Virus record (IMG/VR): IMGVR_UViG_3300028840_008160
Coordinates: 124,001-188,000 of that record
Direction: 5' to 3' (one strand)
DNA length: 64,000 nucleotides
Numbering within the stretch: position 1 is the first letter of the stretch; each line of letters starts with the position of its first letter. Shown here piece by piece: positions 2,428 through 53,873 of this stretch. A program made the translations under genes and the position numbers. Under the pieces are notes generated by a model. The model saw only the letters and a list, made by a program, of their open reading frames with translations. It did not search any database and was not told the DNA's origin.

Positions 2428-2940
2428 ATGTTAATTGATCGTAACTTACAGATCAAGCACGGTGAAATTTTCATGACAATGGAGCATAAAGATGGGACAA
2501 TCGAACGTCATCATGTCGAGAATGTTATTGTTGATGATGCTTCATTACTTATGGCTGAATTGATGAAAGAAAGCAGTGGTGTTGATGGCATCATGGTTCT
2601 TGCTGTAGGTACAGGCGATCCAGGTTGGGATTTACAGAATCCACCTATTGCGACAGCTGCTCAGTCGCAGCTAGTTAATGAATTGGAACGTAAAACGTTT
2701 GAGCAATCTTATTATGTTGATGGCGGCGGTTTACCGACAGTGACAAGAACAAATATTGTCGATTTTGAGACTAAGTATAATGAGACAGAAGCTGTTGGCG
2801 CTTTAGTTGAAATGGGATTATTTGGTGGCACTGGTGCAACTACTCCGGGTAGTGGTACAATGGTTAATTATCATACATTTCCTGTGTGGAACAAGCCGGC
2901 CACATCAACTCTTACTATTGTGTGGAGATTGACATTCTAA
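2428..2940 (+). CDS. Baseplate/tail-collar-type structural protein
   Basis: SD AGGAGG; 'LAVGTG', 'EAVGALVEMGLF', 'LTIVWRLTF' resemble tail-collar/fibre-attachment proteins. Confidence 0.6.
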   Translation: MLIDRNLQIKHGEIFMTMEHKDGTIERHHVENVIVDDASLLMAELMKESSGVDGIMVLAVGTGDPGWDLQNPPIATAAQSQLVNELERKTFEQSYYVDGGGLPTVTRTNIVDFETKYNETEAVGALVEMGLFGGTGATTPGSGTMVNYHTFPVWNKPATSTLTIVWRLTF

Positions 2941-5672
2941 TGAAGCATTTTGGACGGATTCAATCTGAGTTTATGATGAGAGCATCTCGTGATGGCATTA
3001 ATGTACCAGAAGGGACGCTTTTGTCTGTTTACAAAGTTGCAAAAGCTCCACCAAAAGGCAAAAACAAACCAGGTAGTTTTATTGCATTAAAAGGTCAAGA
3101 TGAAGTTCCTAATCCAAATCCTCATGGTAAAAAGCCAACTGTTAAAATAATTTCTTTGTCAAGAGCTGATAAGGGTACGCCTCAAAGACGATTATTTGAA
3201 ACTTTGTATAAAGCTTGGAAGAACACTGGGTCGTATTCTTCTGTTGTTAAAGAGATGAAAGCTAAAGGAAAAGTTAAAGAAACAGCAGAAAAAGTTAAAG
3301 ACCGAGCTGAAGAGATAAAGCGTTTAAAGCAAGAATTAGCTAAAGCTAAAAAAGAAACATCAAAAGAACAACGTGCTCGTCAAAAGCTTGAAGGTAAAAG
3401 ACAACAACTTGAAGAAAAATTAAAACGTAAGCCGAAAGAAAAAGTTGTTGAAAAAGCAGTAGAACCTAAGAAGCAGGTTCAACCAGAAAAAGTTGTTGAA
3501 CCTGAACCTAAAGCTGTCGAACCAGAAGTTAAAGAAGAGCCAAAGACAGAGATTCAAGAACAACATGAAGAATCAATTCAAGAAGAAGAAAAGAACGATG
3601 AGCAATATCAAGAAGTAGAAGCGGTCAAAACTGATATTTTAGAACAAGTTGGTGATAGAACAAGTAAAAGATATCAAGAGACTATTAAGAGAATTGATCG
3701 TAATGAAGACAAATTATATCGTGATGCTGATTTTTTAGAAAACCCACCACCTCCAAAGGCGTCAAGTATTGAGGCGATGAAGAAAGATGCAGATGCTATT
3801 AATCGAGCATTATCAGCATTAGATGTTAAAGGTGCGACTATAGAAGACACAGTAAACAGTCCAAATGTCGTGTCATATAAATTGAAATTTGACACTGATA
3901 AAAATAAAGCAAAAGGTATGAGATCATTGCTTTCTGGAGGCGCTAAAGACGTCGTTAGTTCTTTAGTTGGTAAGAAAGAAAACGTAACGATCTCAGAAGA
4001 CAGAGACGCAGGAACTATCGATATTCATGTACCAAAAGGCACAAGTCTTAAAGATAGAGATACTGTTTACTTCAAAGATTTGATAACTGATGACGATTTT
4101 GTAAAAGCGTCAAAGAATCCTACTAAATTACCTGTAGCATTAGGTAAGGATGAAAATAACAAAGCTATTTTATATGATTTTAGTGACACTCCTCATTTAC
4201 TTGTTTCTGGTGCAACAAAATCAGGTAAATCAGTGTTTATGCAAGGCATAATCAATTCTATTCAGATGAGTAAATCACCAGACGAAGTACAATTAGTATT
4301 AATTGATGTAGCTAAAAAAGGTGCTGAATTTGGTATGTATGATGGTAGTGCTTATCTGGCTAGAGATGTTGCTACTACTGCTAAAGACGCAGAACAATCT
4401 CTTAGAGCTGTGCACGATGAAGTTGGTCGCAGAAACAAATTTTTTAGAGATGTAAGCGAACAAACAGGGCTCAATATTAAGAATATTGAACAGTGGAATA
4501 AGTTTATCACTCAAAATCCAGATGAAATGAGTGATGAAGACCGTGCCGCTTATGATAAGATTCCAGAAGATCAACGTAAAAAGATGCCAAGATTAGTTAC
4601 TGTTGTCGATGAGGCTGCTGATCTTCTTAATAAAGATATCAATCCAAATGCTCAAAGAATAGCGTCAATGCTTGACAGCTTATTAGCTGTTGCTAGATCT
4701 GCTGGTGCTCATGTAGTAATCGCGACTCAATCACCTGCAAAACAAACTATACCAGGAAAGTTACAGAAGAATCTTGGTGCAAAGATGACGCTAAGATTGC
4801 AAAATCAAAATGATGCTGAGAATATTGGTACGCCTGATGCGACTGATTTACTAATGTATGGCGATGGATTTTTTGAAGATCCAACAACTGGTCGCAATAT
4901 TAGAGTACAATCTGGTTATGTTAGTGAAAATGAATCTTCTGAAATTGCTCAAAAAGCTAAAGGTAAGAGTGAACGATTAAAGTCTAAACGTGAACAGGTC
5001 GCCGAACAACGAAAGCAAGAAGAGATTACTGAGTTAGAAAAACCGACAACAGATATGAAAGATCTTGATCAATTTAGATCAGATATGTTAAGAGTAAGAC
5101 AACGTTTAGATGAAGCAAGATCAAAGATGGAAAGGATTTTAGCTGAATCTGCTGAACGTGAAAAAGCAAGGCGTCAAAGAACGGAAGATATAGAAGGAAA
5201 AGAATTTGAAGAAACTGAACGCAGCCGTGCTATAGAAGAAGATGAAGCAGCTCGTAAAAGACGAGTAGAACAAGCAGAATTACAAAGTGAATTTCCCGAG
5301 TTAGAAGTATCAGAACCAGAACTTCCTGAAGAAGCAAGAGAACCAGAAATTCCTGAAGAAGTAAAGTCACCAGAAGAAAAAGCTGTGCCTGTAAGTTCTG
5401 AAGGAGAACCTATTGACGATGAAGATGAAGTGTCTAAAGCAATAGAAGAAATGACAAAAGCACAGCCTATAACTGAAAGTGATATTGCTAAAGCACCAAC
5501 ACCACTGCCACCGGAACGAAGGCAAAGTCTTCTTGATAGAGCAAGAAAATTATTTGGCAAGAAAAAGAGTAGTTCAATACAATTTAATGGTTTTGTTGAC
5601 AATTTAGAATCAGCGGTCGATGACACTATTATTGATTCTTCAATTGATAACTCGCAAAGTTTCTTTTCATAG
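2940..5672 (+). CDS. FtsK/SpoIIIE-family ATPase with long charged low-complexity N- and C-terminal extensions
   Basis: PHLLVSGATKSGKS (Walker A), VVDEAADL (Walker B), HVVIATQSP; ATG 2940 overlaps upstream TAA. Confidence 0.85.
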   Translation: MKHFGRIQSEFMMRASRDGINVPEGTLLSVYKVAKAPPKGKNKPGSFIALKGQDEVPNPNPHGKKPTVKIISLSRADKGTPQRRLFETLYKAWKNTGSYSSVVKEMKAKGKVKETAEKVKDRAEEIKRLKQELAKAKKETSKEQRARQKLEGKRQQLEEKLKRKPKEKVVEKAVEPKKQVQPEKVVEPEPKAVEPEVKEEPKTEIQEQHEESIQEEEKNDEQYQEVEAVKTDILEQVGDRTSKRYQETIKRIDRNEDKLYRDADFLENPPPPKASSIEAMKKDADAINRALSALDVKGATIEDTVNSPNVVSYKLKFDTDKNKAKGMRSLLSGGAKDVVSSLVGKKENVTISEDRDAGTIDIHVPKGTSLKDRDTVYFKDLITDDDFVKASKNPTKLPVALGKDENNKAILYDFSDTPHLLVSGATKSGKSVFMQGIINSIQMSKSPDEVQLVLIDVAKKGAEFGMYDGSAYLARDVATTAKDAEQSLRAVHDEVGRRNKFFRDVSEQTGLNIKNIEQWNKFITQNPDEMSDEDRAAYDKIPEDQRKKMPRLVTVVDEAADLLNKDINPNAQRIASMLDSLLAVARSAGAHVVIATQSPAKQTIPGKLQKNLGAKMTLRLQNQNDAENIGTPDATDLLMYGDGFFEDPTTGRNIRVQSGYVSENESSEIAQKAKGKSERLKSKREQVAEQRKQEEITELEKPTTDMKDLDQFRSDMLRVRQRLDEARSKMERILAESAEREKARRQRTEDIEGKEFEETERSRAIEEDEAARKRRVEQAELQSEFPELEVSEPELPEEAREPEIPEEVKSPEEKAVPVSSEGEPIDDEDEVSKAIEEMTKAQPITESDIAKAPTPLPPERRQSLLDRARKLFGKKKSSSIQFNGFVDNLESAVDDTIIDSSIDNSQSFFS

Positions 5673-8953: not shown

Positions 8954-10411
8954 ATGTTGGCCTTATTACAAGTAGGCAATGTAAATGCTAAGATTGTTGG
9001 TGATTTGACTCAGTCAATAATAGATGATTTGTCTGCTTCAATGTCTTATAAAACGAATGAATACAATGGTTATACTTTTGTTGAAGTTGAATATCATTTA
9101 TTTAATAGATTGCAGCAATCGTTGCCAACGGGCTTATGTTCAAATGCTATTAACGTTTTACGTAAGCACGATATTGAGTATGAAATTGTAGATAAAAGAA
9201 CTACCCCTGATAAAACTGCGCAATTAAAACTGCACGAAGTAACGCCTTATAAATTTCAAAAGACAATTATTAATGACGCGATAACAAGTCAAAGGTTTGT
9301 GATTCAAGTAGCTACTGGTGGCGGCAAAACTGTGATAGCTGCTGCAATTTTAGCTAAGTTGAATATGAAGTCTATGTTTGTTGTTCATACTGGTGATTTA
9401 TTTGAACAAGCATATGATGAATTAACGCGATTGTTGAAAATACCTATAGGTAGAATTGGTGGCGGTTTGTGTGATATACAACAAATCAATGTTGTAATGA
9501 TACAGACAGTTCATGCTGTAATAGGTAAAGCGTATATACCGTTTGATGATGTTGAAAAAGATCAGATGAAAGATGATGATATTGTTCAAAAAAGTTATCA
9601 ACGAAATAAAGACATTACTAAGTTTATACAGTCGGTAGAATGTGTATTAATTGACGAATGTCATCATCTTCGAGCCGACTCGTATATAGCTGTAATGAAA
9701 GCTTGTAAAACAGCTTTTTATAGAGGCGGATTATCTGCTACTCCGTGTAATGAAGATGGTCGAGATATAATTCTTCAAGCATATGCAGGTAGAATTATTG
9801 GTAAAATAACTGCTTCATATCTAATTAGACACAAGTTTCTTACACCGCCAAAGATTTATTATTTATGTGGCACGAAAAACAAACAATACAAGTTTAGACG
9901 AAAAACGTATAGATCGATATATAAGACATATATCGTAAACAGCAATTTTCGAAATACATTGATTGTTGATTGCGTAAGACGATTGCGAGAACTTAATAAG
10001 ACAGTACTGATTACTGTAACAATGAAGAATCATGGTAAGAAATTACTTAAACTGTTAAGTGATGAAAAAATAGATGCTGAATTCATTTTTAGTGGCGTAC
10101 ATAAATTAAAGAGAAAAGAGCATATCGAACGAGTAAGACAGAGAACACTTGGTGTTATTATTGGTACTAGTCTGGCTGATGAAGGGTTGAATATACCGTC
10201 ATTAGATTCATTGATTCTTGCAGGTGGTGGTAAGTCGCCGACTAGAATGATACAACGCATCGGTAGGACGTTAAGAAAAGCTGACGGCAAAGATTATTCT
10301 ATTGTTATTGATTTTAAAGACAATGTCAGATATTTGACTGGTCATTATAAGAAAAGACGAGCAATTTGTGAGCAAGAAGATGCTTTTGAAATTATTGATT
10401 GTTTTGAATGA
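8954..10411 (+). CDS. UvsW-like superfamily 2 helicase
   Basis: ATGGGKT, DECHH, LSAT, QRIGRTLR motifs. Confidence 0.88.
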   Translation: MLALLQVGNVNAKIVGDLTQSIIDDLSASMSYKTNEYNGYTFVEVEYHLFNRLQQSLPTGLCSNAINVLRKHDIEYEIVDKRTTPDKTAQLKLHEVTPYKFQKTIINDAITSQRFVIQVATGGGKTVIAAAILAKLNMKSMFVVHTGDLFEQAYDELTRLLKIPIGRIGGGLCDIQQINVVMIQTVHAVIGKAYIPFDDVEKDQMKDDDIVQKSYQRNKDITKFIQSVECVLIDECHHLRADSYIAVMKACKTAFYRGGLSATPCNEDGRDIILQAYAGRIIGKITASYLIRHKFLTPPKIYYLCGTKNKQYKFRRKTYRSIYKTYIVNSNFRNTLIVDCVRRLRELNKTVLITVTMKNHGKKLLKLLSDEKIDAEFIFSGVHKLKRKEHIERVRQRTLGVIIGTSLADEGLNIPSLDSLILAGGGKSPTRMIQRIGRTLRKADGKDYSIVIDFKDNVRYLTGHYKKRRAICEQEDAFEIIDCFE

Positions 10412-11498: not shown

Positions 11499-12407
11499 AT
11501 GGATGCGATATTTGAAATAGAACGAGTGTTTTTTGAGAAATATATAAATGAATTAAGTAGTGACGCATTCAAAGTATTAGCAAAACTACTTTACTTAGCT
11601 AAGACGACTGAATCTGACATTGAAATTAAAACTAATAGATTGCTTAGACGTGTGATTGGTGTAAACGTCGCATATTCAAGTAGTATATGGAATGAGTTAA
11701 TCGAATATGGTGTTGTGACGAAAAAAGTTCGTAAAGGCAAGATTGTATATGTTCTGAATAGTAAAAAAATTCGTAATGATAATGCCGAATTTGAGATACA
11801 AGCTCAAAAAGTAAGAAGTTTATCTGTTGCTGTATACAATATAGACAGAGTAATACCTGAAGCATTTACAGGTTTAGATGATGATGTTATTAGACGAAAG
11901 ATAAAGTCAACTTTTGAAAATGTTAGTGATGAGTTGTTTGAGGAGTTAGTTAAAACTGTTCAATTGTTGAAATCATATCATACTGATCGTGAAAAACGAT
12001 TTCGTTTGTCAGATTTAGGAAAGTTTTTAATTGGCTTGGTTAAATATGATAATTCAGTAGTAAAAGAAGTATGTTATAGATATAACAACAATAGCAAAAT
12101 TGCTGGAATGCGAGGGCTTAGATACGTTTTAAGGATGGCACAAGGTATCAGTTTAGATAAGAAAAATATTAAGAAAGATACTGTGGACGACGAGAAGATA
12201 ATTGAGAAAAGAAAAACTGAAGGTGAACAAAAATTTGCTATCAAACTAGCTTTAGGCAACATTAATGGCAGTTTAATTTACAATAGATTGTTAAAGAATC
12301 AAGAATATGAAAAGTTAACGGATTATTGGCATAAAGGTGTCATAATATTAGAAGCCGCAAATAGAAAGAATGAAATATTTAATGATTATGGTTGGCTAAA
12401 AACATAA
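11499..12407 (+). CDS. Putative replication initiator / HTH DNA-binding protein
   Basis: N-terminal winged-HTH-like pattern; precedes loader and DnaB genes. Confidence 0.45.
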   Translation: MDAIFEIERVFFEKYINELSSDAFKVLAKLLYLAKTTESDIEIKTNRLLRRVIGVNVAYSSSIWNELIEYGVVTKKVRKGKIVYVLNSKKIRNDNAEFEIQAQKVRSLSVAVYNIDRVIPEAFTGLDDDVIRRKIKSTFENVSDELFEELVKTVQLLKSYHTDREKRFRLSDLGKFLIGLVKYDNSVVKEVCYRYNNNSKIAGMRGLRYVLRMAQGISLDKKNIKKDTVDDEKIIEKRKTEGEQKFAIKLALGNINGSLIYNRLLKNQEYEKLTDYWHKGVIILEAANRKNEIFNDYGWLKT

Positions 12408-15657: not shown

Positions 15658-16947
15658 ATGATTGCTAGTTTGCAAGAACAAGCCAGACCATACAAATTGA
15701 TATTTACAGAAGATGCTGAAGAAATTAAAAAGTTGATGAACAAGACATATGATCGATTGAAAGAAACTGTTGAAGTTTCAGGATTTAGAAAAGGTCATGT
15801 GCCAAGGCAAGTTGCTGAAAAACAAAAATGGTTTAATAAATTTCAGATGTATCGACCCGTGTTTGATGAACTATATATTCGTGCAGTTAACGAATTAAAA
15901 ATAGATGTAGTTGATGCATTTGATTTTGAAGTTAAAGGCCCGTTTGAAGATACTTCACCAGTGACGATTCAAGCTACTGTATTTTTAATGCCTGTTGTAG
16001 AGTCATTTGACATTAATACTGTTAAAGTTCAAAAGAAAGTTACTAATGTAACAGAAGAAATGATTGATGATCAAATTAAGATTCATCTTGACAAATGTGC
16101 GACTTTTACAGCTGTTGATGATCCTGAGTATAAGATTAAAAACGGTGATGTGCTTATCATTGATTATGAAGGAAAAATAAATGGTAAGACATTTAAAGGT
16201 GGAACAGCAAAATTGTTTAAATACATTGTAGGGCAGACAAGATTTATTGAAGGTTTTGCTGAACAACTTTTGACATTTAAATCTGGTGAGTCTGGAGTTG
16301 TTAAAGTCAAATTTCCAGACAATTATTCGTCGACGGAATTACAAGGTAAAGATGCAGAGTTTAATGTGACTGTTCGCAAAGTTGATTCTAGAAGCAATGT
16401 AACGATTGAAGATCTTGCACGGCGTGATAATAAAACAGTACAACAATTTAGAGATGATATTAAAGCTAAACTCATAGTTGATCATGAAAGAATTAATGAA
16501 GAACAATTTAATAGTGATGTATTAGCTGCATGTGTGACAGCTGCTAGTATAGAACCTATTCCAACAAAGATGATTACATGGGAGATTGACAATGAGTGGC
16601 ATCAATTATTGTATCGTTTAAACATGACTGAAGAACAATATTTGAAAGATCGGCCAGAAAGTAAAACAGCATTTTATGCACAAAGACATATTAGAACAGA
16701 AAAAAAAGTACAAATAAAAGTTTTTCTAGATTACATTTGTGAACAACAAAAAATTACTGTTACTGAAGAAGAAGTTGCTGATTTTATTAAGGGTAGATCG
16801 GCAATGCTACAAAAATCTGATGAAGAACGTAAAGAAATATTTGAAAATTTGAAAAAGGAAGCAAATTATAAGGCTGCAGAATCAGCAGTGAAAAACGATA
16901 AGGCAACAGCATATCTTGTAGAATGTATTAGAGTAAAATTGCAATGA
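15658..16947 (+). CDS. tig: Trigger factor (ribosome-associated chaperone/PPIase)
   Basis: GFRKGHVP ribosome-binding signature, FKBP domain (IDYEG...FKGG...FIEGFAEQL...FPDNY), full three-domain length. Confidence 0.92.
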   Translation: MIASLQEQARPYKLIFTEDAEEIKKLMNKTYDRLKETVEVSGFRKGHVPRQVAEKQKWFNKFQMYRPVFDELYIRAVNELKIDVVDAFDFEVKGPFEDTSPVTIQATVFLMPVVESFDINTVKVQKKVTNVTEEMIDDQIKIHLDKCATFTAVDDPEYKIKNGDVLIIDYEGKINGKTFKGGTAKLFKYIVGQTRFIEGFAEQLLTFKSGESGVVKVKFPDNYSSTELQGKDAEFNVTVRKVDSRSNVTIEDLARRDNKTVQQFRDDIKAKLIVDHERINEEQFNSDVLAACVTAASIEPIPTKMITWEIDNEWHQLLYRLNMTEEQYLKDRPESKTAFYAQRHIRTEKKVQIKVFLDYICEQQKITVTEEEVADFIKGRSAMLQKSDEERKEIFENLKKEANYKAAESAVKNDKATAYLVECIRVKLQ

Positions 16948-20875: not shown

Positions 20876-21012
20876 TTGAAAGTGGCGCTTTAGAGCAAGA
20901 CTTCAGAAAAAGTAGCTCAGTTGGTAGAGCGTCAGTTTATTCAACTGAATGTCATGGATTCAAATTCCATCTTTTTTACCTTAAAAGGTTTTGTTCACTT
21001 TCGCCCTTTCAA
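20876..21012 (+). ncRNA. Y-RNA-like RNA 1 (closing stem enclosing a tRNA-like cloverleaf)
   Basis: 5' TTGAAAGTGGCG..GAGCAAGAC pairs with 3' GTTTTGTTC..CGCCCTTTCAA; interior has D, anticodon-like and T arms. Confidence 0.65.
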
Positions 21013-21613: not shown

Positions 21614-21701
21614 TGACGAGTAGCCTAGCGGCAAGGCAGTTGGCTGTTAACCAACCGTGACGCAAGTCCAATCGGGGGTTCGAATCCCTCCTCGTCAGCC
21701 A
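21614..21701 (+). tRNA. tRNA-Asn(GTT) with long variable arm
   Basis: gttgg-ctGTTaa-ccaac; 18-nt variable region; CCA. Confidence 0.85.
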
Positions 21702-23948: not shown

Positions 23949-24034
23949 GGGTGAGTAGCTCAGTTGGTCAGAGCGCCGGGCCGTTAACCCGGAGGCCCAT
24001 TGGGATTTCGTGGGTTCGAATCCCACCTTGCCCT
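23949..24034 (+). tRNA. tRNA-Asn(GTT)-like, C33 and long variable arm
   Basis: ccggg-ccGTTaa-cccgg; 17-nt variable region. Confidence 0.75.
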
Positions 24035-24066
24035 CTTTCTACGCAAATAGATATGATTACTATAAC

Positions 24067-26496
24067 ATGTTAGAGATTATAGGGAAACATTCAACTGCTA
24101 AAATAATGGTTGACGAAGTTGAAGATTCGTGCATGACACAAATCAAAAATTTCGTTGATCATCCTGCATTTACTAATCCAATCGCAATCATGCCAGATAC
24201 ACATGCCGGTATCGGATCTGTTATTGGGTTCACTATGAGGTTGACTAATAAAGTAATACCAAATGTTATTGGCGTTGACATTGGTTGTTTTATTAAGTCG
24301 ACAAAAGTTTCTTTAGCTGATGGTCGTGAGTTAACATTTGAACAATTGATCGAAGAACATGACAAAGGTTTGAGAAATTTTTGTTTTTCAAAAGATGACA
24401 AAGGCAATATTGTTATTGAAGAGATTTTTAGTCCTAGAAAAACAAGAACCGTGACTGAGTTAATTGAGATTACATTAGATAATGATGAAGTGATTACGTG
24501 TACTGTTGATCATATTTTTTATGATATTAATTGTCAAGAGGTTAAAGTTAGTGATATTAATAAAGGACAATCGCTTTATCCTTTATATATTGAAAAATCT
24601 GGAACAGTTCAAGATGAATTGTCAAAAATTAGTAAGAAGTTCAAATTACGCGATTATTTAGTCGTGTACAATCCCAAAACATATAAGTATGATTATATTC
24701 ATATTTTAGCTGATGATTATAATTTACGACATCATGTTTATGAAAAATCAAAATCAATTAGACATCACATTGATTTTGATAAACACAACAATAATCCGAC
24801 AAATATTACAAGAATGCAATGGAAAGATCATTTTGTTTTGCATTCAAAACATGCGAAGCAGCAAAATATTAAAGGGAAATCTGGTTGGTCAGCTGCTTGG
24901 AGAAAAAATAAAGATCGTTTTTCTGAGATGTCATCTAAAAAAATGAAAAAATTGCATGAAGATGCTTTGTTTAAAGAAAGATTGAAAATTAGAGCTAAAA
25001 CAAATAGAAAAAAATATCTAGAATCAGATGCTTTTTATGAAATGACTAGAGATGCAGGTAATAGAGGAAAAAAATATCTTGTTGCATATTCAAAATCAGA
25101 AAAAGGTAGGAACAAATCATCTGAGATTGGCAGGAATGTAGTAAATCAAAAATATCGTTGTTCTATTTGTAATAAGACAATAAAAAGTGCACGGGCATGC
25201 CCTAATCATTTTAACAGAAAAGATCATAAGCAATGTAATTTGAATATGTCTGATATGATATTGTTAAAAAATCACACAGTAAAAAGTATAAAGCGAATTA
25301 GTTGCGAGCCAACAGATGTGTATTGTTTTACGACTAGATTTAGTAATTTTGCATTAGCATCAGGTGTGTTCGTTCATAATTGTGGCATGTTGTCTATTAA
25401 CATTGGTAAAACTTTGCCGATATCGTTAGAGGATTTTGATACAAAAATTCGTCAGAGAATTCCGTTTGGGCAAGAAGTGCATGATGAAGCAGTTATTCGT
25501 ATGGATACGGACTTTCCATGGAAAATTGCAATAAGTAAAGCTGAAGCATTTGCTGCAGCGTTTCGCGAATCTTATAGAGATATCAGTGTTCCAAGATATT
25601 GTATGGACTGGTTTCTTGAAAAATGTGATACTATTGGTGGTGGAGCAAGACGAGTAATTAATTCATTAGGAACACTTGGCGGAGGAAATCATTTTATCGA
25701 AACTGGTGTTTCAACAACAGGTGGTGATTACTGGATTACTATACATTCTGGGTCAAGGAATTTTGGATTAAAAGTTTGTAATTACTGGCAAAGTATTGCA
25801 GCTAAGTCTTTCAAAAAAGAAAGAACTGGAAAGATTCAAGAGCAAATAGAAGAAGCAAAACGTACTCTTGAAGGAAAAGAGTTGTACGATAGAATTAAAG
25901 AAATTAAACGGTCAACATCAACAAGAGGTATTGACATAACACATCTTGAATGGTTGGAAAATGAAGTCGCTGATGGTTATTTATTTGATATGATATTTGC
26001 TCAATTGTATGCTAGTGTTAATAGATCATATATGGCTAAGTTGATTTGTGATGTACTTGGAGTAGAAATACAAGATTCGATTGAGTCTATTCATAACTTT
26101 ATAGATTTTAATGACTTCATCATTAGAAAAGGTGCTATTAGTTCGTATATTGGTGAACCAATGATTATACCATTTAATATGCGTGATGGTATACTTATTT
26201 GTGAAGGAAAATCGAACAAAGAATGGAATTATTCTGCGCCTCATGGTGCAGGCAGATTGATGAGCAGAACTCAAGCAAATAAACGAATTGATTTAGACAC
26301 ATTTAAGAGTCAAATGAACGGGATTTTTTCTACATCAGTGTGCAAGTCGACATTGGATGAAGCACCGGATGCTTATAAGAGTTCTACAATGATAGAGCAG
26401 GCTATTGAACCAACAGCTGCGATTTTAAACAGGATAAAACCAATTCATAATATGAAAGATTCAAGTGAGTTTCAATTTAGAAGAAAGAAGCAATAA
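24067..26496 (+). CDS. rtcB: RtcB RNA ligase containing an intein
   Basis: MPDTHAG, GVDIG|CG, GTLGGGNHF, HSGSR, HGAGR, DEAP.AYK; ATG 24067. Confidence 0.93.
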   Translation: MLEIIGKHSTAKIMVDEVEDSCMTQIKNFVDHPAFTNPIAIMPDTHAGIGSVIGFTMRLTNKVIPNVIGVDIGCFIKSTKVSLADGRELTFEQLIEEHDKGLRNFCFSKDDKGNIVIEEIFSPRKTRTVTELIEITLDNDEVITCTVDHIFYDINCQEVKVSDINKGQSLYPLYIEKSGTVQDELSKISKKFKLRDYLVVYNPKTYKYDYIHILADDYNLRHHVYEKSKSIRHHIDFDKHNNNPTNITRMQWKDHFVLHSKHAKQQNIKGKSGWSAAWRKNKDRFSEMSSKKMKKLHEDALFKERLKIRAKTNRKKYLESDAFYEMTRDAGNRGKKYLVAYSKSEKGRNKSSEIGRNVVNQKYRCSICNKTIKSARACPNHFNRKDHKQCNLNMSDMILLKNHTVKSIKRISCEPTDVYCFTTRFSNFALASGVFVHNCGMLSINIGKTLPISLEDFDTKIRQRIPFGQEVHDEAVIRMDTDFPWKIAISKAEAFAAAFRESYRDISVPRYCMDWFLEKCDTIGGGARRVINSLGTLGGGNHFIETGVSTTGGDYWITIHSGSRNFGLKVCNYWQSIAAKSFKKERTGKIQEQIEEAKRTLEGKELYDRIKEIKRSTSTRGIDITHLEWLENEVADGYLFDMIFAQLYASVNRSYMAKLICDVLGVEIQDSIESIHNFIDFNDFIIRKGAISSYIGEPMIIPFNMRDGILICEGKSNKEWNYSAPHGAGRLMSRTQANKRIDLDTFKSQMNGIFSTSVCKSTLDEAPDAYKSSTMIEQAIEPTAAILNRIKPIHNMKDSSEFQFRRKKQ
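24286..25380 (+). mobile_element. Intein with HNH endonuclease domain in RtcB
   Basis: Starts CFIKSTKV, ends GVFVHN before Cys+1; internal HHIDFDKHNNNPTNI. Confidence 0.9.
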
Positions 26497-27177: not shown

Positions 27178-27449
27178 ACTGTGTAATCTGCGAACGCGAG
27201 GTACCGGGTGAACGGTTTCTTGAAAAGCATCATTTGATTCCAAAATGTGGCAAGGGAAAAGACACTGTAAAAGTATGTGTTGATTGCGGTGATCAGATTC
27301 ATGTATTATTTACTGAAAAGGAACTACGAGACATATACAATACAGTTGAAAAGTTGAAATCAAATGAGCGAATGCAGAAGTGGATTAGATGGATTCAAAA
27401 AAGACCAACATTTGGTACTGTTTGTATGAAAAGAAAAAAGCGCCTATAG
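27174..27449 (+). CDS. Small HNH-family protein
   Basis: CVIC, HHLIPK, CVDC. Confidence 0.7.
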   Translation: MNCVICEREVPGERFLEKHHLIPKCGKGKDTVKVCVDCGDQIHVLFTEKELRDIYNTVEKLKSNERMQKWIRWIQKRPTFGTVCMKRKKRL

Positions 27450-27511
27450 TTCAGTGGTAGAACAACGGTCCCTAAAACCGTGTGTCGTGGGTTCAAATCC
27501 CTCTGGGCGCA
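27440..27511 (+). tRNA. Amber-suppressor-like tRNA (CTA)
   Basis: acggt-ccCTAaa-accgt; cloverleaf with one T-stem mismatch. Confidence 0.7.
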
Positions 27512-34799: not shown

Positions 34800-34885
34800 T
34801 TTAAGGAGGAATGAAATGAGAGTTAAGCTATGTCCTACACAAGTTTTTGATGGCCGAATATGCATGACAAATCAATGTTATGTAT

Positions 34886-34958
34886 AGGGGCATAGCTCAG
34901 GGGTTAGAGCGACGGCCTTAAGCCGTGTCTGTCGTGGGTTCAATTCCCACTGCCCTCA
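34886..34958 (+). tRNA. tRNA-like RNA with 5-nt anticodon loop (CTTAA)
   Basis: Normal D and T arms; acggc-cttaa-gccgt. Confidence 0.6.
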
Positions 34959-35008
34959 TTGTGAAAACTATGAAATCAATAGCATACAATTCTCTAAAAG
35001 GAGATTGT

Positions 35009-47915: not shown

Positions 47916-47992
47916 CGGGCAGTGGCGCAGTCTGGTAGCGCACTTGAATGGGGTTCAAGGGGTCGGAGGTTCAAATCCTCTCTGCCCGACCA
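47916..47992 (+). tRNA. tRNA-Pro(GGG)
   Basis: cttga-atGGGgt-tcaag; CCA. Confidence 0.93.
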
Positions 47993-48007
47993 TTTTTGAG
48001 AATTATT

Positions 48008-48361
48008 ATGCAAAGTTTACACGGGTTAAGCCGAAACAAGTTATATGTTGATGATCCGCATGTGCAATCGCATGCAGCATTGTCTTTATTGGTGACCAAA
48101 TTAGGTGAAGAAAGTCATAAAGAATGGCTGACATTTCGAGTAAAATATTTAAGTCAATTCGAATCATTAGTTTGCCATTATTGTGGAAAAGAAGGATTGT
48201 TAATTGAAACTGATGATGAAGAGCATCTTGCTACCGTTGATCATGTAGTTCCATTGTCGAAAGGTGGAGCCGAATTTGATCCTGAAAATTTAGTTGTGGC
48301 TTGCCTTTCGTGCAATGGTAACAAGAAAGACAAGGATTATGATCGATATACGAACGATTAA
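48008..48361 (+). CDS. HNH endonuclease
   Basis: [26 protein letters not shown]. Confidence 0.85.
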
Positions 48362-49325
48362 AAACGGCTATTGGTGGGATTCTATTGGCAAATTTGATGC
48401 GTTAGTTAATAACGAATTGTCGTTAAGAGAATTAACTATGCAAATAACTGATAGATGCAACATGAATTGTATTAAATGTAATAAGCGAAATTTTACATTT
48501 GAAGATATGAAATCTGAAGATGTTGTTAGAATCATAAACGAATCATGTGATCTAGGGCTAAAGCATATTCATTTTACTGGAGGCGAGCCAACACTGCATG
48601 CTGATTTTGTTGATTTTGTCAAATTATGTAGAAGTAAAGATTTACGAATAGACATGTCTACGAATGGTATGTTTAATTATGAAATGGGTAAGTCATTAGT
48701 TGATGCAGGTATTAATTCAATAAATGTTTCATGGGATTACATAGACAAAGAACCTGAATGTATCAGCTTTATCGGTGACTTTCCAATTAAAGTGTTTTTG
48801 AATCATATGGTGATACCAGATAATTATGATAAGTTGTGTGATTTTTTACTTCATGTGTTTAATTTGAAGTTCATTGAAGATATTCAGTTAATGCCGCCAA
48901 GAGGAGATGCGCAAAAGTTCACAAAAGAACAAATTAATGATTTTTGTCAAGCAGTTGATAAATCACATGTCTTAAGTAGATCTATTGTATCAGGCAAACG
49001 TCGTTTTCCAATGGTTGCTTATAAGATTTGTGATCTTTTAACTGATAGTGAGGCAGATAAAGGTATTTATCATGAACGAATAAGTTGGCCATGTCATAGG
49101 TCAAAAGCTGAATTACGAGTCGGTTGCAAAGGATTTGTAACATGTACTTATTTATATCGTGATGGTCATATTACATGTGGTTTAGATCATTCGGTAAAAG
49201 ATGCATGGGAAAAGTGTATGATTGAATGTGAATCTATACCACCTGTAAAACATATGTGTGATTTTAGTTGCAGTCCTGAAGTATGTTATTTCAATTATTT
49301 TGTTGAGAATAGAATGCCCTCGTAG
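48339..49325 (+). CDS. Radical SAM protein
   Basis: CNMNCIKC, FTGGEP, STNG. Confidence 0.88.
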   Translation: MIDIRTIKNGYWWDSIGKFDALVNNELSLRELTMQITDRCNMNCIKCNKRNFTFEDMKSEDVVRIINESCDLGLKHIHFTGGEPTLHADFVDFVKLCRSKDLRIDMSTNGMFNYEMGKSLVDAGINSINVSWDYIDKEPECISFIGDFPIKVFLNHMVIPDNYDKLCDFLLHVFNLKFIEDIQLMPPRGDAQKFTKEQINDFCQAVDKSHVLSRSIVSGKRRFPMVAYKICDLLTDSEADKGIYHERISWPCHRSKAELRVGCKGFVTCTYLYRDGHITCGLDHSVKDAWEKCMIECESIPPVKHMCDFSCSPEVCYFNYFVENRMPS

Positions 49326-49392: not shown

Positions 49393-49467
49393 CGGGGTAT
49401 AGCTCAGTCTGGTTAGAGCGCTGCGTTCGGGACGCAGAGGTCGTCAGTTCAAATCTGACTACCCCGA
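49393..49467 (+). tRNA. tRNA-Pro(CGG)
   Basis: ctgcg-ttCGGga-cgcag. Confidence 0.93.
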
Positions 49468-49511
49468 TTATCTTCGATTTAATGCATGATTATCATTCAA
49501 AGAGGTTAAAT

Positions 49512-50903
49512 ATGTCAATGGAAAAACTCTACGAATCGCTTCACAGACGTTTACGTCCCGAAGATGTCGCAGAACTTATTTTAAAAGTTTTGCACCCTAA
49601 TCTGACACGTTCTGAACGTGATGAGCTTAATAAAATCGCTAAGCATTCATTAAAGCGCGGAATGTATTCGTTTACTTCAATGGCTCAAGATTTTCATTGT
49701 GCTATTGCACCTGATCGCCAAGTAAAGAAAGCAAAGGAGTTGTTTGAAACTGCATATAAAATTGATTGTACTGACCCTGAAGCAGTACTTGCGTTGATTC
49801 GTACTATTTCCAAAGAGATAGAGAAAACTGTCGGTAAAGGTGATTTCAAAGACGACAGAATGAATCGCGAAGCACGTAAATCACATGGACTTGACATTTC
49901 TCGTCGTCGGTATAACAAATTGTTCAGATTTCTTGGCAGATTTGAACAAAAAGTTGAGAAGTATGTGTTTGAAATGCGCAAAGAACGTGCTACACGCGTT
50001 TCAAAATCGGGTCTTGCGTTTAAAGTTTCCGAGAAAGATTTTATGAAGTCAAAAGAAGCAGCATGCTTTGTTGCTTATTTTACTGCAAGAAAGAATCGCA
50101 GAAGTGTATTTACTAATTCATCGCAAGATCGTGCATATGATAATTTGTCAAAACTTTTATTGAACAAATTTAAATCAAATCCTTGTCGAGCAGGTTGGCG
50201 AATTATAGCTAGAGTGATGCCTGATGCTGAAATTGTTGCAAAATTAACAAAGAAAGACAAGATGGAATTGTTTGCGACATGGATTGATGTTCTTAATGAC
50301 ATTGCTGATATGCTTAAGACTGTGTGGTTGGGTAGCCGGTTCAATCGAGAAACTATGGTTGTTTCTCGCGGTGATGATTCAAGCACATGGAATTCTTTGG
50401 CTGGCGCATGGAACACTGCACGTCAAGGATGGTTCAGTCTTGTTTATGCTCTTGGCATGGATAAGATGCTTGAAACTGTTTGTTTTGGTAAGGTTATGAG
50501 ATTGATGGCTGCTGATGTTGTTCGTTGGCATCAGTCAAGTGGTGGTCAACTTGAGCCTGATACTTTGGTATGGGCCACATTACCAGCTCCATGGGAAGTC
50601 TTTTCGGGCGAAAAAGAATGTTCAAAGCAAATAGTTGAAGGTGTTTGCAAAAAGAATAATGTTGATCCTGTTCGAAAGAATTGGATAATGCCAATTAAGT
50701 CAAGATCAGCTGTTGAATTTAAACCGACGCCTGAACTTGTTCATGGTGTAACAGTGTCGCATCCAGGGTTGGCTAATATTCTTAAGAAAGCTGGATGGTT
50801 TTCTGGAAAGCAAGCTGTTCCAGTTTCAGAAGCAGTTGTAGTTGATCATGATGAACATGGAGCAGTTGTAGGAGCAAACTTTGCAAATGCGTCGTCGATA
50901 TAG
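49512..50903 (+). CDS. Basic helical protein of unknown function
   Basis: SD AGAGG; promoter-like motif at 49472; stop codon lies inside the following tRNA-like gene. Confidence 0.75.
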   Translation: MSMEKLYESLHRRLRPEDVAELILKVLHPNLTRSERDELNKIAKHSLKRGMYSFTSMAQDFHCAIAPDRQVKKAKELFETAYKIDCTDPEAVLALIRTISKEIEKTVGKGDFKDDRMNREARKSHGLDISRRRYNKLFRFLGRFEQKVEKYVFEMRKERATRVSKSGLAFKVSEKDFMKSKEAACFVAYFTARKNRRSVFTNSSQDRAYDNLSKLLLNKFKSNPCRAGWRIIARVMPDAEIVAKLTKKDKMELFATWIDVLNDIADMLKTVWLGSRFNRETMVVSRGDDSSTWNSLAGAWNTARQGWFSLVYALGMDKMLETVCFGKVMRLMAADVVRWHQSSGGQLEPDTLVWATLPAPWEVFSGEKECSKQIVEGVCKKNNVDPVRKNWIMPIKSRSAVEFKPTPELVHGVTVSHPGLANILKKAGWFSGKQAVPVSEAVVVDHDEHGAVVGANFANASSI

Positions 50904-50966
50904 CTCAGTGGTAGAGCGCACGGCTCTTGGACCGTGTGGACGCTGGTTCGAGCCCAGCTGTCGACG
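50894..50966 (+). tRNA. tRNA-like RNA with 8-nt anticodon loop (CTCTTGGA)
   Basis: cacgg-ctcttgga-ccgtg; normal D and T arms. Confidence 0.6.
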
Positions 50967-50975
50967 CTATACTAT

Positions 50976-51047
50976 GACCTTGTAGCTCAGCGGTAGAGCT
51001 GTCGGCTCCTAACCGACTGGACGCTGGTTCGAGCCCAGTCAAGGTCA
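50976..51047 (+). tRNA. tRNA-like RNA, CCT anticodon, paralogous to 50894
   Basis: gtcgg-ctCCTaa-ccgac; same variable loop and T arm as neighbour. Confidence 0.65.
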
Positions 51048-51048
51048 C

Positions 51049-51082
51049 AAAATCGAGCAGTCAAAAACTGCTCGATTTTTTT
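51049..51082 (+). terminator. Intrinsic terminator
   Basis: AAAATCGAGCAGT-caaaa-ACTGCTCGATTTT then T-run. Confidence 0.85.
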
Positions 51083-51120
51083 ATGTAAAATTATCAATGT
51101 GATTAGTAAAAAAAAAGTAT

Positions 51121-51861
51121 ATGATAACGTTAAGAGATCATCACTTTAAAGGTATTCAAATTGATATTAATGTCGAATGCAATCTTATGTGTTATAATTG
51201 CAATAGATCTTGCAGACAAGCACCTAGTAATGAAATGATGACAATTGATCAGATCAAGAAGTTCATTGATGAAAGTATTCAAGCAAATTATTGTTGGCCA
51301 CAAATTGATATTCTCGGCGGTGAACCGACATTGCATCCAAAGTTTCTAGACATTGTTCAGTTATTTAACGATTATAGACAAGTACATAATCCAAATTGTG
51401 TTTTGAAAATTGTTACTAACGGTTACACGGATGAAACAAATAGATTGATTGATGAAGCAAATAAAATCACACACTTATGGGTTGAAAATACATTCAAGAA
51501 ATCTGTTGTACAATCATTTAATCCATTCAATGTCGCGCCAATAGATACTCTTAGTGACATAGATTATTCAGCTGATTGCTGGATTTTGCAGTTATGTGGC
51601 AAAGGCTTGTCATTCAGTGGATATTATTTGTGTGCTGTTGCAGCATCTATTGACAGAATTTTTGGGTTTGATATTGGTCTAAAACATTTGACTGACATTA
51701 ATCAAGATGCACTTAAGAAGCAGTTAATAAAATTATGCCCATTATGTGGGCATTGGCAAATTCCAAATGATAAGTACGTTAATGAAGAAATAATGTCAAA
51801 AACATGGGTGGAAGCATATGCACGATACAAGCAATGTCGACCGAGATTGTCTTTATATTGA
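51121..51861 (+). CDS. Radical SAM protein
   Basis: CNLMCYNC, GGEPTLHP, VTNG. Confidence 0.88.
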   Translation: MITLRDHHFKGIQIDINVECNLMCYNCNRSCRQAPSNEMMTIDQIKKFIDESIQANYCWPQIDILGGEPTLHPKFLDIVQLFNDYRQVHNPNCVLKIVTNGYTDETNRLIDEANKITHLWVENTFKKSVVQSFNPFNVAPIDTLSDIDYSADCWILQLCGKGLSFSGYYLCAVAASIDRIFGFDIGLKHLTDINQDALKKQLIKLCPLCGHWQIPNDKYVNEEIMSKTWVEAYARYKQCRPRLSLY

Positions 51862-52559: not shown

Positions 52560-53171
52560 ATGTATTTAATTGTTGATTTTGAAGCTACGTGTTGGAAGAA
52601 AGACACTCCTGAAGGGCGTCGTAAAACTAATCGTAATGAAAATGAAATCATTGAGATTGGTGCTGCGATTGTCAATGATAGTTTTCAGATGATATCATCT
52701 TTAGGTTTGTTTGTTAAGCCGATATTGAATCCTGTGTTGTCAGATTTTTGTAAACAACTTACTACAATAACGCAAGAAGATATTGATAATGCTGAACCAT
52801 TGTCAAAAGCATGGATTAAATTTGAAAATGATGTAAGACTTATCACAGATAAAATGTTATCAGAGTTCGTGTTTTGTTCGTGGGGTCATTATGATAGACG
52901 ACAACTAAAGCGTGATTTAGATAGACACGGATTACAGTTTCCATTTACATATCATGTTAGTCTGAAACACGATTTTTTAGATCGAACAGGAAAAAGGTTT
53001 GGCGTTGGTCAAGCTTTACAGTATTTTGGATTGCAATTTGAAGGGACACAGCATAGAGGTGTTGATGATGCAAAAAATATTGCAAGAATTTTTGCTATAG
53101 AATGGAAATCAACAGGTTTTATATTAAGAGATGATCATAAATGCGCGACACAAGATATGTTGAAAAGCTGA
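52560..53171 (+). CDS. DEDDh 3'-5' exonuclease (ERI-1/KapD-like)
   Basis: VDFEATC, EIIEIG, WG.YD, HRG.DDA. Confidence 0.9.
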   Translation: MYLIVDFEATCWKKDTPEGRRKTNRNENEIIEIGAAIVNDSFQMISSLGLFVKPILNPVLSDFCKQLTTITQEDIDNAEPLSKAWIKFENDVRLITDKMLSEFVFCSWGHYDRRQLKRDLDRHGLQFPFTYHVSLKHDFLDRTGKRFGVGQALQYFGLQFEGTQHRGVDDAKNIARIFAIEWKSTGFILRDDHKCATQDMLKS

Positions 53172-53232: not shown

Positions 53233-53873
53233 GGGGGTGTACTGGTTATCGACGTGTGGTGTGAACTATGAGTTGCATGTCGAGGATAGTCGTTGGCCTC
53301 GTTAATCATCGGCTAAAACCATAACTGCCAAAGCTAATAACTTTGCGGTTGCTTTCGCTCGTCAGTTCGCTGACAATGTACGCTTCGGCGTCATGGCGGG
53401 AGCGCTCCAAGCTGCCTAATTAAAGGCAGCAAAGAAACAGGACGACGCCGCTGATTCTGTTTCTCAGCTAGCGGCTGGATTCTTAAGTGGGTTCGGCTTA
53501 AGAGTTAAGAAATACAGACCGATTCGTGGGGAATAGTTGGTCATCTACCTACCCGGCGTCTTATTAAAAGTTGACTAAACATGTAGTAACTTGTACGGAT
53601 TGTCACACGGACAGGGGTTCGATTAATTTGGTCGCTTTAGTTGGTAACAACTATTGAAAAGTGGGTGAATTCAAGGAACTCTAAATCAAGTAATTGACAT
53701 GACAACCTTGAGCCAAGTCGGTTGAAGAGCAAATGTAAACCGAAAGGTGCAGAGACTAAGAGGTGAGAAGCTCAATCAATAATCCTCTATTAGCGCCCAT
53801 CATCCAATACCATGGATGAAGAAATAGTCCACACCATCATGAAAATGATGGATTATGTGTCCCCTCACCTCCA
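53233..53873 (+). ncRNA. ssrA: tmRNA interrupted by group I intron
   Basis: GGGGGTG/CACCTCC-A acceptor with G3.U70; tag frame 53327-53419 ending ALQAA. Confidence 0.92.
53624..53859 (+). mobile_element. Group I intron in tmRNA T-loop (no ORF)
   Basis: GAATTCAAGGAA, ACCTTGAGCCAAG, GCAGAGACTA, AATAGTCC, terminal G; removal restores AGGGG-TTCGATT-CCCCT. Confidence 0.88.

Follow-up and report, generated by a model that had tools for sequence, protein, structure and literature searches.

The stretch of DNA analysed here, 64,000 nucleotides that correspond to positions 124,001 to 188,000 of IMG/VR virus record IMGVR_UViG_3300028840_008160 (hereafter the window), is part of a phage contig of approximately 330 kb and contains a 1.6-kb cassette in which the gene of a basic protein of 463 amino acids is followed by two RNAs with the shape of transfer RNAs (tRNAs). 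The protein and the RNAs constitute a dedicated module, and chance adjacency is excluded, because they co-occur whichever of the two is taken as the starting point, no third partner accompanies them, the body of the RNA is frozen and part of its loop is free, and the acceptor stem has an extra pair. The module is real and widespread and apparently undescribed: no description of it was found in the full-text literature, subscription-only papers lying outside the search. In current annotation the gene is hypothetical and the RNAs appear as tRNAs that are odd or undetermined, and for this reason the link between protein and RNA stayed invisible. What it hid is a large and strongly conserved protein family, with a confidently predicted structure, no name and no known fold, that has an obligatory partner RNA derived from tRNA.

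The cassette and the co-occurrence of its parts

Coordinates are counted from the first nucleotide of the window, all genes of which lie on a single strand. The cassette consists of the following elements.

49500-49505, plus strand: Shine-Dalgarno-like AAGAGG, 6 nucleotides before the ATG at 49512 (read from the sequence)
49512-50903 including the stop codon, plus strand: gene of the 463-amino-acid basic protein, predicted to be mostly alpha-helical (open reading frame, ORF)
50893-50966, plus strand: RNA 1, tRNA-shaped (tRNA call at 50894-50966/7; ARAGORN; Rfam, 60.4 bits)
50975-51047, plus strand: RNA 2, paralogue of RNA 1 (tRNA call at 50976-51047/8; ARAGORN; Rfam, 66.9 bits)
51049-51086, plus strand: intrinsic terminator, a 13-bp hairpin at 51049-51079 and then a T run (terminator scan and folding)

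The start at ATG 49512 is supported by the AAGAGG that precedes it and by the N-terminus that the homologues share; an alternative start, ATG 49482, would give 473 amino acids. The protein has an isoelectric point of 9.58, with 78 lysines and arginines for 57 aspartates and glutamates. Its stop codon, the TAG at 50901-50903, lies within RNA 1, of which it forms positions 8-10 (U8-A9-G10). The two RNAs are identical at 54 of 73 positions and have in common TGGAC and GCTGGTTCGAGCCCAG, which span the variable loop and the T arm. Neither encodes CCA, their 3′ tails being G-CTA and A-CAA, respectively. The anticodon-arm loop has 8 nucleotides in RNA 1 (CUCUUGGA, 50924-50931) and 7 in RNA 2 (CUCCUAA, 51006-51012, anticodon CCU). 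The terminator hairpin has a free energy of −17.5 kcal/mol (z = −6.0), and none of 200 shuffled sequences folds as stably. A first-pass annotation, made from the sequence alone, had already described a basic protein with two paralogous tRNA-like RNAs, the TAG inside the first of them, the shared TGGAC stretch, the missing CCA, the single 8-nucleotide loop, and the strong terminator, and all of these stand. The promoter that it also assigned to the cassette was not recovered, as a sigma-70 scan finds no plus-strand site in the 44 nucleotides between the preceding tRNA-Pro (which ends at 49467) and ATG 49512; because of this, co-transcription with the upstream tRNAs is possible. Readthrough of the TAG was considered and rejected, since long ORFs of the window end in all three stop codons (TAA 15, TGA 12, TAG 9) and the C-terminus of the protein aligns with those of its homologues.

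Co-occurrence was analysed in 96 loci, of which 80 from bacterial genomes and 12 from viral contigs were found via the protein, and four came from an exact protein look-up. The bacterial loci represent about a dozen phyla and include Serratia, Andreprevotia, Chryseobacterium, Hymenobacter, Chitinophaga, Kordia, and Ktedonobacter, as well as planctomycetes, acidobacteria, cyanobacteria, Armatimonadota, and Verrucomicrobiota. When the RNAs are identified with R1, a covariance model of the RNA family (membership cut-off of 65 bits or more), at least one family RNA, and at most two, is found beside the gene in all 96 loci, including three that ARAGORN misses. ARAGORN calls one or two tRNA-like genes directly after the gene in nearly all loci, and most of these calls have four-base "anticodons" (i.e., 8-nucleotide loops). 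As a rule, the unit has no further tRNA within 10 kb. The distance from the stop codon to the RNA has a median of 12 nucleotides, and in 21 of 78 loci, the window included, the RNA overlaps or abuts the end of the gene. A few phage loci are arranged differently, with the RNAs just upstream of the gene. Units with two RNAs that differ in their loops are frequent (53 of 81 loci). Whether homologues of the protein are followed by similar RNAs was the check that the first-pass annotation had proposed, homologues devoid of tRNA-like neighbours being what would have spoken against its idea; a family RNA accompanies every one of the 96 genes, in bacteria of all these phyla and in phages.

The association also holds in the reverse direction. 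A DNA pattern built on the RNA only matches three viral contigs, all of which encode the protein, and 80 metagenome loci, 68 of which encode it on the same strand and adjoining the RNA. Among the other 12, three have no room for the protein, three lie in phage tRNA arrays (one of these contigs encodes the protein elsewhere), and about six are orphans. Individual cases are L122, L131, and L158, whose family-type RNAs with 8-nucleotide loops belong to phage tRNA arrays and are distant from the protein gene, and L166 and L178, where such RNAs are solitary and no family protein is encoded close by. An unrelated ORF of 479 amino acids is found just upstream of the RNA of L108, on the same strand, and L166 has another one nearby on the opposite strand. 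In E. coli genomes, no family RNA was found. The hypothesis of a conserved third partner was dropped, as the clustering of 1662 neighbouring ORFs revealed no other gene family that travels with the protein-RNA pair.

Anatomy and evolution of the RNAs and of the protein

The cloverleaf of the RNA family is well supported: an alignment of 62 copies has 99.3% of its cells paired and compensatory changes in 16 of 21 pairs, which none of 500 shuffles reaches. The D arm, the variable loop UGGAC, the T arm, and the two G-C pairs that close the anticodon stem are nearly invariant across phyla; the acceptor stem is free to vary in sequence and keeps its pairing. The same body is found whatever the "anticodon," and the triplets at the anticodon position differ widely. 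The loop starts with C32-U33-C34 (C-A-C in three copies), followed by 3-6 variable nucleotides. Among 144 RNAs, 86 have loops of 8 nucleotides, 47 of 7, nine of 9, and two of 6. A further peculiarity is a pair between positions −1 and 73, formed in the window by C 50893 and G 50966 in RNA 1 and by T 50975 and A 51047 in RNA 2. Of 125 unique RNAs, 81% have this pair, and each of the four Watson-Crick types is well represented among them; slid positions give 28-34%, and none of 2000 shuffles attains the observed value. This eighth acceptor pair brings the acceptor/T helix to 13 bp, a length also found in tRNA-His and tRNA-Sec. With R1, RNA 1 scores 90.7 bits and RNA 2 scores 82.8 bits, and the next-best score of the window is the 68 bits of an ordinary tRNA-Lys(CUU). 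The family thus looks like a specialised offshoot of tRNA-Lys(CUU).

The two RNAs of the window share with ordinary elongator tRNAs a cloverleaf that has the canonical tertiary-core nucleotides, at the Rfam scores listed above. An elongator, however, has a loop of 7 nucleotides and an anticodon conserved among orthologues, whereas loops of 8 nucleotides are the majority here and loops of 6, 9, and 12-15 nucleotides occur; its acceptor stem has 7 bp and leaves the discriminator unpaired, whereas position 73 is paired with −1 in both window copies; and it is not tied to one protein gene, in contrast to the 96 of 96 loci and 68 of 80 loci reported here.

Rates of change were compared between units, taken in pairs with a protein identity of 80% or more. 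Differences per site amount to 0.006-0.034 in the RNA body, 0.22-0.52 at fourfold-degenerate codon sites, and 0.17-0.32 in the variable segment of the loop, which therefore diverges at 0.6-0.8 of the fourfold-site value and in addition changes length frequently. For example, five Serratia loci have four different loops and not one change at 64 body positions. Judging from these comparisons, the would-be anticodon segment is nearly unconstrained, or diversifying, and the rest of the RNA is frozen.

A distant subfamily has proteins that are about 33% identical and differ in the N-terminal 150 or so amino acids. A tRNA-shaped RNA is found near the end of the gene in all five loci with enough flanking sequence, just downstream and on the same strand in four of them and convergent in one. 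These RNAs keep GGCUC where the anticodon-arm loop begins. The loop has 12-15 nucleotides and starts with CUCAC in four of the five and has about 14 nucleotides in the fifth (L191); the D loop contains hairpin insertions in three of the five. RNAs of this kind would be unable to decode. The association between protein and RNA is old, given that so divergent a subfamily keeps a tRNA-shaped RNA with CUC, and its constant element is the tRNA shape plus the CUC anchor. A search of viral contigs found no member of the distant subfamily. The sequence UCACCU occurs in two of the four long loops (L190, 4648-4747; L193, 3008-3084) and CUCCUU in a Serratia loop (L003, 11357-11429); we take these few examples to resemble the 3′ end of 16S rRNA (the anti-Shine-Dalgarno sequence).

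The protein family is large and compact. A word-index search gives more than 1480 homologues of 440-490 amino acids and 47-69% identity, all unnamed and free of Pfam domains, from Myxococcus, Corallococcus, Chitinimonas, Microcystis, Prosthecobacter, Gemmataceae, and many metagenomes. Serratia fonticola, Chryseobacterium, and Myxococcus fulvus are culturable carriers of the unit. An exhaustive profile search gives 572 clusters at 50% identity, essentially uniform in length; at 90% identity the family comprises more than 1480 clusters, and it keeps 45-60% identity across phyla. Residues Y134, D210, S290, N294, R304, K327, D335, H340, and H411 (numbered as in the protein of the window) are invariant. 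The 463-amino-acid protein has no match in Pfam, PHROG, PADLOC, or NCBIfam, nor in a profile search of the PDB, and the longer relatives have no recognisable added domain. A tblastn search of GenBank phages found no match. In one Longimicrobium locus (L065, 9629-10975), the protein gene has an in-frame stop and the two RNAs, with 74 and 77 bits, are among the lower scorers; the unit is possibly in decay.

AlphaFold2, run with 60 sequences, predicts a protein that consists mostly of helices and has a small beta unit at its C-terminus (predicted local distance difference test, pLDDT, 93.8; predicted template modelling score, pTM, 0.91). With the full model, Foldseek retrieves nothing from the PDB at E ≤ 0.001, and VIA-align retrieves only helical hairpins from 48,161 chains (best Z = 6.6). 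The conserved core, residues 116-463, modelled separately (pLDDT 91.5), likewise has no PDB fold match, with helical hairpins only and a best Z of 5.1. No known fold is thus detected in the predicted structure, which falls short of proving a new one. In a viral structure library, the only relatives are uncharacterised proteins of Edafosvirus and Yasminevirus, giant viruses of the Klosneuvirinae, which match over the whole length (E about 1e-14, TM score about 0.65). The module is common to many bacterial phyla and to huge phages with their own tRNA sets, and structurally it extends to giant viruses with expanded translation genes. Two motifs were rejected as clues to function. The GDD of RGDDSSTWN recalls RNA-dependent RNA polymerases, but many members have N in place of the first D, and the predicted structure is helical; for a HEPN-type Rx4-6H, inspection of the alignments revealed no such conserved spacing.

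Possible roles of the module

The first-pass annotation had inferred a dedicated protein-RNA system instead of ordinary decoding tRNAs, and this is upheld by the 96 loci, by the eighth acceptor pair, and by the CUC followed by a free stretch. Among the forms that it suggested for such a system (decoy, frameshift tRNA, or ribonucleoprotein, RNP), the evidence leans away from a frameshift tRNA and towards a non-decoding RNP or a mimic. Our best overall explanation, which we hold tentatively and at less than even confidence, is that of an autonomous two-part unit, a non-decoding RNP in which the RNA mimics tRNA and the protein is directed at tRNA. The part of this explanation that concerns the RNAs is the firmer one: they are probably non-decoding, excised by the tRNA-processing enzymes of the cell, and bound by the protein through the invariant body and CUC to give an RNP. 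The part that concerns the protein is distinctly less secure, and it may be, though less likely than not, that we deal with a tRNA-directed effector for which the private RNAs are non-reactive mimics, in a conflict module akin to toxin-antitoxin systems. Whatever the activity, tRNA biology is concerned.

This explanation would work as follows. One or two private tRNA-shaped RNAs would be made from the 3′ end of the protein's own transcript, cut out by cellular tRNA-processing enzymes, and then bound by the protein, which would recognise them by their invariant body and by the CUC side of the loop. The protein would act on the anticodon-loop region of real tRNAs, and the private RNAs, with their C34 and enlarged loop, would fill its tRNA site, thereby restraining the protein or setting its specificity. 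Such a conflict module could be used by bacteria and by tRNA-rich phages able to replace the tRNA pool of the host. Where the stop codon lies inside the RNA, as in the window, excision of the RNA would strip the stop from the mRNA, and the outputs of protein and RNA would be coupled because a stop-less mRNA would be left. The unit is small and self-contained, and hence directly testable in E. coli.

Several observations fit this explanation poorly. No catalytic motif was identified in the 463-amino-acid protein. RNAs that resemble tRNA are usually stable, which is unusual for an antitoxin, and the gene order, protein and then RNA, is the reverse of that of type III toxin-antitoxin loci. A handful of family-like RNAs lack an adjacent protein gene. 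The bacterial neighbourhoods are varied and consist mostly of housekeeping genes instead of defence islands; the family is rare on plasmids (7 of 72,556); and the same genomic position has been inherited across about 16 Chryseobacterium species, which is more suggestive of a stable host function than of an addiction module. Finally, two traits fit functional tRNAs: a minority of copies encode CCA, and the loops obey some of the rules of true anticodon loops, in that they have C32 and U33, the next-to-last position is a purine in most cases, and G is seldom found at the last.

Known systems offer partial precedents for a protein paired with a tRNA-like RNA. In tmRNA-SmpB, a tRNA-shaped RNA (transfer-messenger RNA, tmRNA) works with one dedicated basic protein, a small one, and the system is also widespread and phage-borne. 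However, tmRNA has a tag reading frame and no anticodon arm, whereas the private RNAs are complete cloverleaves without a reading frame, which Rfam calls tRNA, and the 463-amino-acid protein is three times larger than SmpB and does not match the SmpB model. The Ro60/Rsr proteins and their Y RNAs (YrlA, with a tRNA-like domain) occur in bacteria and in some jumbo phages (PMC7824862). They too associate a helical RNA-binding protein with a tRNA-like noncoding RNA encoded beside it, but Y RNAs add a long stem next to the tRNA-like module, and our protein has neither a TROVE nor a vWA domain in Pfam and no Ro structure among its fold matches. An Rfam match to YrlA in the region was discarded as chance-level (20.8 bits for a threshold of 69, over other tRNAs).

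Regarding a role in conflict, anticodon loops are a known battleground: PrrC, PARIS, and retron effectors target tRNAs, and phage tRNAs counter the retron effectors (PMC11555353). A phage rich in tRNAs can hold out against such attacks. The module further resembles ToxIN, PrrC, PARIS, and retrons in being a compact unit of protein and RNA, with a terminator, that spreads horizontally and is found in phages and bacteria. It differs from type III toxin-antitoxin systems in that ToxI is a tandem-repeat RNA upstream of a small endoribonuclease, whereas the private RNAs are tRNA-shaped and in most loci downstream, and it differs from ToxN/AbiQ and other defence models in having no PADLOC or Pfam match and no surrounding defence island. 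The operator of thrS, which codes for a known synthetase, is an example of tRNA mimicry in autoregulation; it lies in the 5′ leader and mimics only the anticodon arm. There, as proposed here, part of the transcript takes the form of the tRNA bound by the encoded protein, but our RNAs are complete tRNA shapes, lie at the 3′ end, and go with a gene whose function is unknown.

Alternatively, the RNAs could be special-purpose decoders, i.e., real tRNAs with a modification-independent C34 that read NNG codons or, with 8-nucleotide loops, four bases or +1 frames. The protein would then be their private maturation, C34-modifying, charging, or delivery factor, recognising the constant body and not the anticodon. 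We regard this as unlikely, although it has serious points in its favour: the canonical tRNA core with full covariation support, C32-U33 and the purine-rich next-to-last loop position, the encoded CCA of some copies, the sensible anticodons of 7-nucleotide loops (e.g., CUU, CUG, CGU, CAU), and the phage and giant-virus settings rich in translation genes. Loops of 8 nucleotides can decode, as does that of yeast mitochondrial tRNA-Thr1 (PMC7609411), and the +1 frameshift-suppressor tRNAs SufB2 and sufD are reported to have 8-nucleotide loops as well (10.1101/2020.12.31.424971). RNA 1 likewise has one extra nucleotide in its loop. These precedents, however, are single mutants or belong to a single lineage and have a defined codon, whereas the family studied here is large, has loops of 6-15 nucleotides, a private protein, and the extra acceptor pair. 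Among close relatives the "anticodon" drifts in sequence near the neutral rate, and in length too, and this neutral-like drift with variable loop lengths leans against the decoding of four-base or shifted codons. The loop turnover, the loops of 12-15 nucleotides in the distant subfamily, and the tRNA-Arg(CCU) that the window already has besides RNA 2 were all counted against decoding, as were the 6- and 9-nucleotide loops and the pairing of the discriminator with −1. No recoded target gene travels with the unit, and the standard code applies to the gene of the family itself.

Systems such as tRNA-Sec with SelB-SelA and tRNA-Pyl with PylS also encode a deviant tRNA beside a protein that recognises its body and not its anticodon. 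Yet these tRNAs have a fixed stop-codon anticodon and a recoded codon, where our RNAs are free in the sequence and length of the loop, and their partners are GTPases or synthetases, where the 463-amino-acid protein has no synthetase-like or GTPase-like domain in Pfam, and fold searches of the PDB reveal no such fold and no known modification enzyme. The RNAs of this family should be counted neither as decoding capacity nor as natural quadruplet decoders in phage genomes.

A third possibility, for which we would give similarly poor chances, is that the RNA is a guide scaffolded on tRNA. The body and CUC would dock on the protein, and the variable 3-12 nucleotides of the loop would pair with the anticodon loop of a target tRNA or with mRNA, so that loop turnover would mean retargeting. 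The module would then represent a new class of programmable RNP, in which the loop guide selects anticodon loops or mRNA sites for attack or blockade; if so, bacteria and giant phages would be using guides against each other's translation. A hypervariable loop within an almost frozen scaffold is what this predicts, and the Serratia loops indeed differ at several bases with the body unchanged. The frequency of units whose two RNAs have different loops and the longer, G-poor, single-stranded loops of the distant subfamily are consistent with it as well. By inspection, U-N-G-G-A in many 8-nucleotide loops would complement U33-C34-C35-N36-A37 of tRNAs with CCN anticodons. On the other hand, 3-5 nucleotides provide very little specificity, the rate per site in the loop does not exceed the fourfold rate (i.e., positive selection is not shown), and neither a target nor a nuclease domain was recognised.

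The possibility that the unit of about 1.6 kb is itself a mobile element, with the protein as a new recombinase or nuclease and the RNAs as 3′ tag, primer, or target mimic, is improbable. It does account for the pattern of transfer. Between loci with unrelated flanks, homology begins 30-75 bp before the ATG and stops shortly after the last RNA, and the unit is found in unrelated chromosomal contexts. For example, the units of Agriterribacter (L026) and Fluviicola (L033) are 91.8% identical within unrelated flanks, which indicates that the bare unit was transferred recently. In part of the loci the RNA reaches into the 3′ end of the gene, which is another point in its favour and the only likeness to TnpB/IscB with omega RNA and to IS110 with bridge RNA; no RuvC, HNH, or DEDD domain was hit. 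However, the loci have no terminal inverted or direct repeats in common, only one locus per genome was found among those fetched, and neither sequence nor fold resembles a transposase, an integrase, or a reverse transcriptase. The scarcity on plasmids and the fixed position in Chryseobacterium do not fit a mobile element either. L026 and L033 have a common 10-bp inverted repeat (GTTAGTGGCA) at both borders of the unit, absent from other loci, and in L033 a direct repeat of about 130 bp, made of a palindromic element, brackets the unit (about 9840-9960 and 11550-11680). These were at one time considered as transposon-like ends and were dropped as local peculiarities.

That nothing is special here, two ordinary phage tRNAs having come by chance to follow an unrelated gene at the edge of a tRNA array, can be dismissed with near certainty: it could appeal to the 56 tRNA calls of the window, to RNA 2 passing for a tRNA-Arg(CCU), and to Rfam scores of both RNAs above the tRNA threshold, but it is refuted by the co-occurrence in all 96 loci, bacterial chromosomes with no other tRNA within 10 kb included, by the reciprocal test from RNA to protein, and by the family-specific loops, R1 scores, and −1:73 pair.

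The surroundings of the cassette

The cassette is located at the edge of a translation island of the phage, between two radical-SAM genes; the ARAGORN tRNA calls of the window span 20.9 to 51.0 kb. Other features of the window include the following.

2886-5672: FtsK-like ATPase
15658-16947: trigger-factor homologue
20906-20980: AT-rich "Asn(AUU)" tRNA call
21614-21701 and 23949-24035: two "Asn(GUU)" tRNA calls of 87-88 nucleotides
24010-26496: RtcB RNA ligase, interrupted by an intein
27440-27511 and 34885-34959: odd members of the tRNA array with the suppressor-like anticodons CUA and UUA
44172: ordinary tRNA-Arg(CCU), with the same anticodon as RNA 2
47948-48361: HNH endonuclease
48294-49325 and 51121-51861: radical-SAM genes flanking the cassette (Pfam-type domain search)
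52560-53171: RNase T-like exonuclease
53241-53625: phage tmRNA (Rfam, 102.7 bits; not called by ARAGORN)
53610-53851: group I intron (94.1 bits), which the 3′ end of the tmRNA abuts or overlaps

The radical-SAM, HNH, and RNase T-like neighbours are not conserved beside the cassette in any of the other loci. The upstream radical-SAM gene overlaps a tRNA-Arg(CCG) at 49316. The phage carries a broad set of genes for translation and RNA repair, with tmRNA, RtcB, and trigger factor among them.

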